From NCBI RefSeq assembly GCF_001194135.2, contig NC_068994.1, forward strand, positions 59,779,576-59,843,575: a stretch of 64,000 bases of DNA. Reading direction: 5' to 3'. Below the pieces are notes generated by a model that saw only the letters and a program-made list of their open reading frames with translations, was not told the origin of the DNA and made no database searches. This stretch comes from Octopus bimaculoides (lineage: Eukaryota). Position 1 is the first letter of the stretch, and each line of letters begins with the position of its first letter. The position numbers and the translations under genes are program-made. Positions 50,701-54,869 of this stretch are shown here, piece by piece.

Positions 50701-53700
50701 ACAACATTGGCACCAGCCTTTCCCTTTGCTGGACATGAGTGGTGTGAAGAAGGGACACTTGCACGTATGTGCAATTACCAGTCTTCTTCAAAAAATCTTA
50801 TCCAGGTTTGTACATAAATATGGTCAGCTTTGACTGACCACAACTCTATATGCACACATTCTGACCACACCATAGCACTAGACTACCTTATACTTATCCT
50901 CCTCTTGCAATTACCTTCTCCATTTCCCATTGCCATCACAACCTACCATTCCTTATCATCACCTCAATATTGATCAATTGCCATTAACCATGACGACCAC
51001 CATCACAACTAATCTTATATCAATCAGTTCTTCATCTCAACTTCACTTTCTCACTCTCTTCCTCCTCTCTCTCTCTTGTGTTGAGTTCAGGTTCATTTGG
51101 AGTTGATTTTGACTTGAGCATCAATGCTTTCTACGACGCTCTGCTCATTTATACCAGTGACGAGAATACGCCGAAATTACTGAAGGACATCCGACTCGTG
51201 ATCAACGACCGTGACAGCGTGACGTTTGCCATCATCATCCTCAACCAGCTGAATTCGATGGACTCTAAAGAAATCACAGAGGCTGCCCTGGAGCGTTATA
51301 AATTTTCTTGTAGGAAACAATCTCAAAGACATTGTTCACAGCAGACAAAGAAAGCCGCCAATGTTTCTGCAGAACCAAAGACCAGTGATGCAAAAGTAAA
51401 GAAACAGTTGGTTGCCAAAGAGTCCCAGTTAGAACCACCAGCACCATCAGAGGTTAATAAACCAATAGGGTTGGGTTCACCTCGTCGCAGTCCCTCCTAC
51501 ACCCAAGCAATGTGCCAACTGGAGAATGGCTGCATGACGAAGAACAACGATGCACAAACCAACTGTGAACAGAAAGCAAATTCTTTAAATTTCCGCAAGA
51601 AAGCTGATTGCAAAATCGATGAAGAGAGTCCAGATGGAGTCACATCGTGCCTTTCAGCTTTAATTCATCAAACTAAAACAACTCTGGGAGCCATTAGAGA
51701 GACTAATCTGGACCGAAAACGATCCAGTTCTGTGGGGTCGGTGGTGCGAAACCGAATACAGTCTAGCGTTGTAGGTGGAAGTGACATGGATGTTCGCGTC
51801 GGCGCAAGGCTGGCTAGATCCACTTCATGCCATCTGGAAAAAGATGAGAAGAATGCTGCTAATGCAACCAACAACACAAACGGTAGCAACAATGTTAACA
51901 GTAATTGTGAAGATGGAGGAAAAGGATGTAGCAGCAAAGAAACAAAAGGTTCCAAGGCGTCCTGCAGCTCTGCGACATCAACGCCGTCCAAAGGTCACCA
52001 AGCTACTTCTGTTAAGCAAGCACTATTGAGTACATCACAAAAAGTCCATTCTAAAGACTCGTCGAAACCCCGTTCCGGTTTCCAACCGCCAAAAAACATG
52101 GAGAGTACATCAGAGAAAGAATCTAAATCGTCAAGCCATCGTGGAGAAAAGAATAAGAAAGACACAGACAAATCAAAGAAGGACGGAGATTATGATATGC
52201 GTGCAACAAACCACATCAATGCTCTTCTGGACAAAGAGCGTGACTTGTGTAGTAGCTGTCGAGAGAGAATTGGACAGCGGGAAGAACTGTGCTGTGGTCA
52301 CTGCTTGTGTAAAGCGTGCTACCGTGAAATCACGAAGAAGAAACCTGTCTGCCCTGACTGTGGCACCGTGTATGCACCGATTGTTGGGGATCAGCCCAAG
52401 AACGGCAAAATGTGTGTGACAATGGAACATAAACTGAAATTGCCCGGATATGAGACAGCCAATGGAACTATTGTCATTAACTATACAATACCTGATGGTA
52501 TACAAGAGGTGAGTTTACTATTTCATTATCGCTCTCTCTCTCTCTCTCTCTCTCTCTCTCTCTCTCTCTCTCTCTCTCTCTCTCTCTCTCTCTCTCTCTC
52601 TCTCTCTCTCTCTCTCTCTCTCTCTCTCTCTCTCTCTCTCTCTCTCTCTCTCTCTCTCTCTATCTATCTATCTATCTATCTCGATGTATGTATGTATGTG
52701 TGTATACATGTATATATATGAAATGTAACATATACCTTTCAGAAACATAGCTTCAGATTTGATGTAAAAGCTAAAGTAAACGGATGTCCCTCAGTTTTAA
52801 CCATGTGTCTTCTAGTTGTTTGATCAACTCGACAACAACCTCTTCATTAGCATAGAAGTGGTCGAGTATTCCAGTACTGGGCTCTTGTCAAGCAGAATCA
52901 TGATGTGTGACAAGAGTGGCCCTTTAGAATTACTCGTATGATCCATCCAATGGACTTCCTCCCACCACCATCACAGTTTCCATCTACCCTGCTTCATCCA
53001 CGAGGTGCCAATTGACCAAATACTTCGATTAAAGTCACTTATTGGAAGGAAATCCAGAAAAGTGATAAATAAGCATTGGATTATTGAATTGGTCTGTGAT
53101 CCTCAGAAAATATGACAAAAATCATTTTAAGGAATTTTATTCTCTCATAAATCAAGTTTATGGTCTTCCTTTAATTCCTGCTGCTTCCATTTACAGCTGA
53201 AAATGGCAAAACCCTTGAAGATTTGAAATCATTGACAGCAAGAATATTTTAGTGATTTTTAAATTCTTCAAATATTTATTGATTTTTTTTCTAAGAATAC
53301 ATTGAGCAAATAGAAGATTTCCGTTATGTCAAAGAGTTCTTGTGTCTGTGTATGGCGTCAAAAACATTTTGTTTGTGTTACAATTTTTAGAACTGAAAAG
53401 GACAATGGTTCTTCACATAATATGCCTTTCTATTGACAGTCATGCCATCCAAACCCAGGAAAACGTTACCATGGTACATGTCGTACGGCCTATCTACCCA
53501 ACAACCGCGACGGCAACGAGGTACTGAAGTTATTGCAGAAGGCATTTGAATCACGCCTGACTTTCACCGTTGGCCAGTCACAGACAACTGGTCGCAAGAA
53601 TGTTGTCATCTGGACTGACATAAACCACAAGACCAGTCCTTGTGGAGGTCCAGCTAAGTAAGTGCTCTTTTATGTTGTTCTTGTTGCCATTCAATAATGG

Positions 53701-54869: not shown

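Follow-up and report, generated by a model that had tools for sequence, protein, structure and literature searches.

A putative octopus DTX3L orthologue with a substituted catalytic dyad: a candidate pseudo-ligase of the cephalopod lineage

What becomes of a Deltex-type ubiquitin ligase when both residues of its catalytic pair are exchanged for amide look-alikes? The question is raised by a gene on the forward (+) strand of a 64 kb stretch of the Octopus bimaculoides genome (hereafter the window, meaning the whole stretch analysed). The gene encodes a protein whose parts run in the order RRM-like domain, KH-like domain, long disordered region, macro domain, RING and DTC, numbered here by a six-exon model of 1515 amino acids (aa). 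An earlier note, drawn from the letters of the window, had pointed to an asparagine and a glutamine where Deltex proteins carry a histidine and a glutamate in the DTC. It proposed either that ADP-ribose (ADPr) chemistry was lost while ubiquitin ligase (E3) activity on proteins was kept, or that the protein is a pseudo-enzyme or decoy. We find that these two substitutions, together with a third at an adenine-stacking position, are fixed and old. On balance, we favor a cephalopod-lineage DTX3L orthologue that would no longer carry out ester-type ubiquitylation, would probably lack E3 activity of any kind, and would be kept as a binding or scaffold protein.

The case begins with residue equivalence, which we assigned with phmmer against sequences of the Protein Data Bank (PDB); MAFFT, run with additional relatives, gave the same assignments. 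The octopus DTC aligns without a gap, from the F-T-V-G strand through to the C terminus, to human DTX3L (3PG6, E-value (E) 6e-42), DTX2 (6Y22, E 7e-34) and DTX1 (6Y5N). Asn1482, in the motif W-T-D-I-N-H-K-T, falls on DTX3L His707 and DTX2 His582; Cys1494, in N-C-G-F-P-D, on DTX3L Tyr719 and DTX2 His594; and Gln1508 on DTX3L Glu733 and DTX2 Glu608. The codons, coordinates and residue numbers that the earlier note gave for the asparagine and the glutamine are all correct. Its placement of both on the published catalytic pair (DTX2 H582/E608, DTX3L H707/E733) is borne out by the gapless alignments and by work on the human enzymes (PMC7615817, PMC11460948). It was also right that adenosine-to-inosine editing, a route to recoding, cannot yield CAC from the AAC codon or GAG from the CAG codon, as follows from the genetic code.

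Two neighboring residues had been named as places to which the catalytic pair might have moved, His1483 and Glu1510, and the alignment puts it on neither. His1483 aligns with the invariant second histidine of the motif, a residue that active enzymes also have and that does not rescue their H582 mutants. Glu1510 lies in a variable column and, being two residues along the helix from Gln1508, would face another side.

These positions are otherwise highly constrained. Among 67 non-cephalopod DTX3L-like sequences, conservation reaches 100% for the histidine, 97% for the glutamate and 99% for the asparagine of W-N-D-I-H. Of about 73 conserved RING-DTC columns, 64 are unchanged in the octopus protein and nine differ: I1336S and F1353L in the RING, G1376A in the RING-DTC linker, and E1444D, N1479T (the Asn of W-N-D-I-H), H1482N, Y1496F, R1504L (the Arg of R-V-x-x-E-L) and E1508Q in the DTC. 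Nine random changes would include both dyad columns with a chance of ~0.014, or ~0.0014 if the RING isoleucine is added. The domain is consequently not "otherwise intact", as had been claimed: the W-N-D-I-H asparagine is now threonine, the R-V-x-x-E-L arginine is leucine, and the adenine-stacking residue is cysteine. Among 316 sampled DTC domains, the combination of Asn and Gln occurs in three, all from the cephalopod lineage.

Published structures and mutants indicate what such changes could cost. His582 of DTX2 is positioned between Glu608 and the 3'-hydroxyl of ADPr, an arrangement resembling a catalytic triad (Zhu 2022, PMC7615817). Every tested substitution of either residue impairs the formation of ubiquitin (Ub) conjugates of nicotinamide adenine dinucleotide (Ub-NAD+), and even the conservative E608Q has a marked effect (PMC7615817). 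In the DTX2 pocket, Trp578 and His594 stack on the adenine, His582 hydrogen-bonds the ribose, and Arg535 and the backbone of Ser567/Ser568 hold the diphosphate (PMC7442474). In DTX3L, H707A abolishes ubiquitylation of single-stranded DNA and RNA, and Y719A and E733A impair it (Dearlove 2024, PMC11460948). Because the human enzymes are impaired by mutation at the same residues, the octopus protein is likely unable to activate a hydroxyl for ubiquitin transfer, and hence would write neither Ub-ADPr nor Ub-nucleic acid.

Part of the pocket remains. Trp1478, Arg1435 and Ser1467 are kept, whereas the aromatic/His position is Cys1494 and the position of DTX2 His582 is asparagine. Beside the pocket, Cys1488 and Cys1494 bracket a loop reading C-G-G-P-A-N-C, an arrangement present in all three cephalopod-lineage sequences introduced below and in none of the other DTCs aligned.

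The DTC fold is predicted to survive the substitutions. An AlphaFold2 model of an orthologous DTC carrying the same Asn, Cys and Gln (P0001), built from a 70-sequence alignment, reached a predicted local distance difference test (pLDDT) score of 95.3. In Foldseek comparisons it matched DTX3L (3PG6) with a template modeling (TM) score of 0.95 and a root-mean-square deviation of 0.9 Å, and the DTX2-ADPr complex (6Y3J) with a TM score of 0.92. The superposition that had been suggested as a check yields a domain folded like those of DTX3L and DTX2. A model made from seven sequences was discarded, with a pLDDT of 60.9 and values below 50 in the pocket region.

Could the unusual residues instead reflect sequencing or assembly errors, a true exon hidden in a gap, or a pseudogene? 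The window comes from a draft assembly rich in gaps: its 64 kb contain 12 runs of N, one of them between the two exons that encode the core and the end of the DTC. This gap lies within intron 5, leaves the reading frame unaffected and conceals no exon, because several independent comparisons agree on the exon 5-6 junction. First, the splice sites are canonical and in phase (donor GCTAA/GTAAGT, acceptor TTTCAG/C), and the junction codon AA/C encodes Asn1493. Second, a spliced transcript contig from another species (Logan SRR29271464, contig L001) has the same junction with zero additional residues, as do the RefSeq model of O. bimaculoides and the protein of Argonauta hians. Third, the alignments to DTX3L, DTX2 and DTX1 cross it gap-free. 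Moreover, the 1515-codon frame is intact over six canonical GT-AG exons, the same residues appear in independent Argonauta hians data and in the third species' transcript, and nonsynonymous divergence is far below synonymous. Pseudogene, sequencing error and hidden exon are therefore rejected on the cross-species data, and we regard any origin of this kind as negligibly probable.

The same comparisons speak to the age of the substitutions. Asn, Cys and Gln are present in O. bimaculoides, in Argonauta hians (GAB1604051.1; 97% identical over the DTC) and in the L001 transcript (91%), whose source is a deeply diverged, presumed cephalopod species. Between the window and L001, the proportion of synonymous differences in the DTC (pS) is 0.90, which is saturated, against a nonsynonymous proportion (pN) of 0.054. 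The Gln1508 codon itself differs, CAG in the window and CAA in L001, with the amino acid unchanged. Between Octopus and Argonauta the DTC is 97% identical, as against 72% in the disordered region. In a further genomic relative (P0186, L002; ERR runs), pN is 0.04-0.05 in the KH-like and macro parts and 0.35 in the disordered part, with pS at 0.8-0.9. Since three diverged sequences share the residues and pN is far below pS, the three substitutions are fixed and old, and the DTC is under purifying selection. Sequencing error, which the earlier note had held open as a way for its reading to fail, is thereby excluded.

Which protein is this? An exhaustive HMMER search of 1.84 billion representative proteins returned 2628 DTC proteins. 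A macro-RING-DTC layout occurs in about 35 of the best 150 of these, several of which also match the RRM/KH N terminus. Orthologues with the same architecture come from gastropods (Patella, Babylonia, Haliotis), a bivalve (Solemya), an annelid (Owenia), a brachiopod (Lingula), a hemichordate (Saccoglossus) and amphioxus (Branchiostoma). All of these keep C-x-I-C in the RING, W-N-D-I-H-H-K-T, an aromatic residue or His at the stacking position, and E-E-L. The N-terminal 160 aa of the octopus protein match macro-RING-DTC proteins of Patella, Babylonia and Saccoglossus. A 2026 preprint independently describes metazoan DTX3L orthologues as typically carrying an RRM, and reports that the macrodomain is ancestral and was lost from DTX3L as PARP9 arose in vertebrates; it terms H707, E733 and Y719 strictly conserved.

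Judged by similarity ranking and shared architecture, the octopus gene appears to be the cephalopod orthologue of the ancestral, macro-domain-bearing DTX3L, an identity that the earlier note did not recognize. Given the canonical residues in non-cephalopod orthologues of the same layout, and the preprint's account, the ancestral state was canonical, and Asn, Cys and Gln are derived. The alignment with molluscan orthologues proposed earlier therefore divides: Asn and Gln are kept in the cephalopod-lineage sequences, but the gastropods and the bivalve have His and Glu. No canonical cephalopod paralogue is named among the 120 matches listed, which counts for little because the index is sparse for eukaryotes.

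If ester chemistry is lost, does the protein remain a ligase toward lysine? The earlier note had called the RING intact, and as to the zinc ligands this stands. The protein has a C3HC4 RING of the pattern C-x2-C-x10-C-x-H-x2-C-x2-C-x10-C-x2-C at aa 1334-1371, separated from the DTC by a few residues, with all eight ligands present. Also retained are Leu1347, which precedes the third ligand, and Pro1369, which follows the seventh. The description fails at the surface that docks the ubiquitin-conjugating enzyme (E2). There, two residues after the first cysteine, the hydrophobic position of C-x-[IVL]-C is Ser1336 (in C-S-S-C). Among 91 DTC-linked RINGs sampled, this position is I in 83, V in five, L in one and S in two, the two being O. 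bimaculoides and Argonauta. The residue after the second RING cysteine is Arg, where relatives have Leu or Met. By numbering, Ser1336 would correspond to DTX2 Ile414, and DTX2 I414A/Y425A abolishes binding of the E2~Ub conjugate (PMC7442474). The window protein gave no Pfam RING match at E <= 0.01; the precomputed Pfam list of the Argonauta orthologue includes PF00097 and PF13639.

The macro domain bears on the same question. Its best PDB match is PARP14 macro 1 (E 1.4e-22), and the N-x6-G-G and G-x-F-G loops are retained. The aspartate of G-D-I-T, which contacts adenine in most macro domains, is present in most non-cephalopod orthologues, PARP14 macro 1 and a bacterial MacroD. In the cephalopod-lineage sequences it is replaced by Ser (C-E-S-I-T, ~aa 828-832) or, in the distant relative, by Asn, a loss that had also gone unrecognized. 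As a separate observation, an optional 45 nt cassette exon, absent from the Argonauta model, adds 15 aa to the diphosphate loop of this domain (I-S-T-G/S-F-G), an insertion that would probably disrupt ligand binding.

These features frame the first option of the earlier note, an ADP-ribose-guided, lysine-directed E3 that has lost only its ester chemistry. Its RING would recruit an E2 while the macro domain, the DTC pocket or both bring in ADP-ribosylated proteins. Such a ligase would be in keeping with the zinc ligands, Pro1369 and Leu1347, with a macro domain still recognizable (Pfam E 1.2e-21) and its two loops kept, and with Trp1478 and Arg1435 in the DTC pocket. It would also draw on two published findings: lysine autoubiquitylation by DTX proteins is separate from ADPr ubiquitylation and competes with it (PMC7615817), and a DTX2 DTC triple mutant binds E2 normally (PMC7442474). 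Against it, the E2-docking isoleucine is a serine seen, among the RINGs sampled, only in the two octopods, and Arg follows the second cysteine in place of Leu or Met. The adenine-contacting macro aspartate is Ser or Asn, and both direct ADPr contacts of the DTC (DTX2 His582 and His594) are replaced. We consider this option rather unlikely. Of the alternatives originally offered, a pseudo-enzyme or decoy is now the better supported; loss of ester-forming chemistry is likely, and retention of protein E3 activity has become doubtful given the Ile-to-Ser change in the RING.

The joint replacement of pocket residues admits one further explanation, that the pocket was rewired by Asn, Gln, Thr and the cephalopod-only Cys1488 and Cys1494 to bind or modify another ligand by a chemistry unlike His-Glu base catalysis. 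Several lining positions did change together and then froze, with the same N, C, Q and T in all three sequences despite their deep divergence. The two cysteines at the ends of the C-G-G-P-A-N-C loop occur in this lineage only, and few parts of the protein are as conserved as the DTC, whose Octopus and Argonauta versions are 97% identical. Conservation alone, however, cannot tell binding from catalysis, Asn and Gln cannot act as a general base, and the RING contact that would bring E2~Ub to the pocket is weakened. New chemistry of this kind would be without precedent, and we judge it improbable.

We therefore return to a non-catalytic DTX3L orthologue, which can be set out in three steps. First, loss of His, Glu, the adenine-stacking residue and the W-N asparagine would most likely end the formation of ester-linked Ub-ADPr or Ub-nucleic-acid conjugates. 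Second, the serine where the E2 should dock would probably leave the RING-DTC cassette with little or no E3 activity, which favors a pseudo-ligase over a lysine-only ligase. Third, strong purifying selection would keep the protein as a non-catalytic binding or scaffold module. The Asn-Gln pair could maintain a hydrogen-bond network without base catalysis, and a phosphate or nucleotide might still be bound by the retained Trp1478, Arg1435 and Ser-Thr loop. Near-isosteric His-to-Asn and Glu-to-Gln changes with Trp and Arg kept are what a designer of a binding-competent but dead pocket would choose, and the protein may therefore act as a reader or scaffold. With the stacking residue and the macro aspartate both gone, the ligand may have ceased to be ADP-ribose altogether.

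Several points weigh against this interpretation. Its functional claims derive wholly from mutants of human DTX2 and DTX3L. The RING serine weakens the canonical E2 contact without proving its loss, since Pro1369, Leu1347 and the zinc ligands are kept, and lysine could still be modified with the help of another E2 or of a partner RING. The start of the RING is read in two octopods only, as the L001 contig begins past the second zinc ligand. The very strong conservation of the RING-DTC region would also fit a retained but rewired enzymatic role. Finally, the term "cephalopod-wide" reflects similarity and saturated synonymous divergence, not taxonomy.

A broader scenario is possible, and we offer it tentatively. 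At the cephalopod stem, a single-chain ADP-ribose reader and ubiquitin writer may have been turned, as a whole, into a protein without enzymatic function. Each center would have lost its key residue: the macro domain the aspartate that contacts adenine, the RING the isoleucine that docks the E2, and the DTC its His-Glu dyad along with the stacking residue. The folds would then have been frozen by strong purifying selection, while a long Ser/Arg-rich region was gained beside the RRM and KH domains. The DTC would then resemble a substrate trap, and the protein might serve in scaffolding, perhaps linked to RNA. If this is true, cephalopods would lack DTX3L-type ubiquitin-ADP-ribose marking.

The gene model behind these comparisons has six exons joined by canonical GT-AG introns into a single open frame, and its numbering matches that of the earlier reader (Table 1). 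The protein is 99% identical to XP_014782569.1, annotated as uncharacterized protein LOC106878006 isoform X1 [Octopus bimaculoides], and the cassette exon is the sole difference between that isoform and the 1515-aa model. Pfam identifies a PARP14-type RRM (RRM_PARP14_3, aa 9-76, E 1.5e-7, above cut-off), the macro domain (aa 841-957) and the DTC (PF18102, aa 1380-1514, E 4.8e-55, with 132 of 133 profile positions covered). No further genes were found on the minus strand of the window.

Table 1. Features of the octopus DTX3L-like locus (positions in the window).
Feature	Position	Strand	Description
Exon 1	14532-14706	+	Start codon ATG at 14532; aa 1-58, first part of RRM-like domain; donor AAAG/GTGAGT; tblastn with the Argonauta orthologue (P0009)
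Exon 2	16413-16486	+	aa 59-83, rest of RRM-like domain; acceptor AG/GTGTAC, donor AAACCA/GTAAGA; corresponds to P0009 residues 59-83
Transposase remnant	17543-18470	+	Within intron 2; Mos1/mariner type
Assembly gap	18593-19110		Interrupts the transposase remnant
Exon 3	24019-26611	+	KH-like domain, ~670 aa Ser/Arg-rich disordered region, N-terminal half of macro domain; last residues I-S-T-G
Disordered region	24470-26450	+	aa ~151-820 (~670 aa), Ser/Arg/Lys-rich, between KH-like and macro domains
Cassette exon (optional, 45 nt)	29327-29371	+	Included in RefSeq isoform X1; matched exactly by P0185 residues in tblastn; AG/GT flanks
Exon 4	51091-52508	+	C-terminal half of macro domain, linker, RING (C-S-S-C...C-P-D-C, aa 1334-1371), N-terminal lobe of DTC
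RING motif C-S-S-C	~52247-52258	+	aa 1334-1337; holds Ser1336
Exon 5	53440-53657	+	DTC core from H-P-N-P-G-K on; holds Asn1482
Motif W-T-D-I-N-H-K-T	begins at 53611	+	
Asn1482	53623-53625	+	AAC
Cys1488	53641-53643	+	Start of loop C-G-G-P-A-N-C
Intron 5	53658-54799	+	GT...AG, phase 2; encloses assembly gap
Assembly gap	54079-54510		Within intron 5
Exon 6	54800-54869	+	DTC end; holds Cys1494 and Gln1508; stop codon 54867-54869
Cys1494	54801-54803	+	TGT
Gln1508	54843-54845	+	CAG
Trinucleotide runs	55040-55110		3' untranslated region just past the stop; long CTC and CTA runs

Outside the catalytic domains, the disordered region is ~400 aa longer than in the gastropod orthologues and evolves fast, with 48% identity to the distant relative against 92-95% in the flanking domains. 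The transposase remnant in intron 2 matches the Pfam families HTH_48 (E 8e-10) and Transposase_1 (E 1.6e-12) and is broken across several frames. The window is also rich in CA/TG and CT/GA microsatellites and contains 12 assembly gaps.

The family, its fold and its mechanism are already known. What the octopus gene adds is a case in which both dyad residues became amide look-alikes across an animal lineage under long and strong constraint. It offers a natural separation-of-function variant for what the DTC does apart from catalysis, and an instance of pseudo-enzyme evolution with clear polarity, owing to the canonical orthologues in other molluscs. It also raises the question of whether cephalopods make the ubiquitin-ADP-ribose hybrid mark, and is relevant to the Deltex, ADP-ribose-ubiquitin crosstalk and pseudo-enzyme fields. 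Our literature search found no paper mentioning both DTX3L and cephalopods, nor one describing such a catalytically stripped orthologue.

Among characterized proteins, human DTX3L (BBAP) is the closest solved relative, with 55% identity over the DTC, and the E-value and model TM score given above for 3PG6. Both proteins begin with RRM-like and KH-like modules, have a RING that leads straight into the DTC, and end in K-G-I-x. In contrast, the human RING reads C-V-I-C, the human DTC has His707, Tyr719 and Glu733, and human DTX3L attaches ubiquitin to ADPr and to single-stranded nucleic acids. It has no macro domain and depends on PARP9, whereas the octopus protein has its own macro domain and a far longer disordered region. 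The invertebrate macro-RING-DTC proteins, among them those of Patella caerulea (KAK6185919.1), Babylonia areolata (XP_076461066.1), Haliotis rufescens (XP_048249649.1) and Lingula (XP_013402775.1), share the RRM/KH-like N terminus, single macro domain, RING and DTC, and are the best matches to the octopus N terminus and macro domain. Unlike the octopus protein, they have an aromatic residue or His before G-Y-P-D, are ~400-500 aa shorter, and mostly keep the G-D-I-T aspartate.

The engineered mutants of DTX2 (E608Q and H582) and DTX3L (H707A, Y719A and E733A) alter the same positions, with the Glu-to-Gln change identical, and product formation is lost or strongly reduced (PMC7615817, PMC11460948). 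They are, however, single laboratory changes in otherwise active enzymes, whereas the octopus protein combines all three with changes at the W-N asparagine and the RING isoleucine, natural and conserved.

Other natural departures, with partial loss of these residues, occur in teleosts. Zebrafish dtx3lb.2 (P0011, Danio rerio) has Gln for Glu and Asn for the aromatic residue, a medaka DTX3L-like protein (P0133, Oryzias latipes) has Ser for His and Asp for Glu, and Anabarilius grahami DTX3L (P0006) has Asn for His in the third of three tandem DTCs. Unlike the octopus protein, these belong to expanded paralogue sets and keep the C-x-I-C RING. Metagenome and transcriptome data (P0013-P0063) also hold many proteins of 400-600 aa with two DTCs, one carrying H-H-K-T with Ser or Ala at the Glu position and the other P-H-K-T with Ala, so that the His-Glu dyad of the literature is missing from most of these domains. 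Such departures are common in the wider DTC family and temper the published statement that the dyad is strictly conserved in Deltex proteins: family-wide it is not, and the cephalopod case stands as one clear, ancient and complete example.

PARP9 is the inactive PARP partner of DTX3L, and BARD1-type RINGs bind no E2. Neither is homologous to the octopus protein in the relevant domain, but they illustrate the same idea: the fold is conserved, key catalytic or docking residues are lost, and the protein serves as a partner, reader or scaffold.

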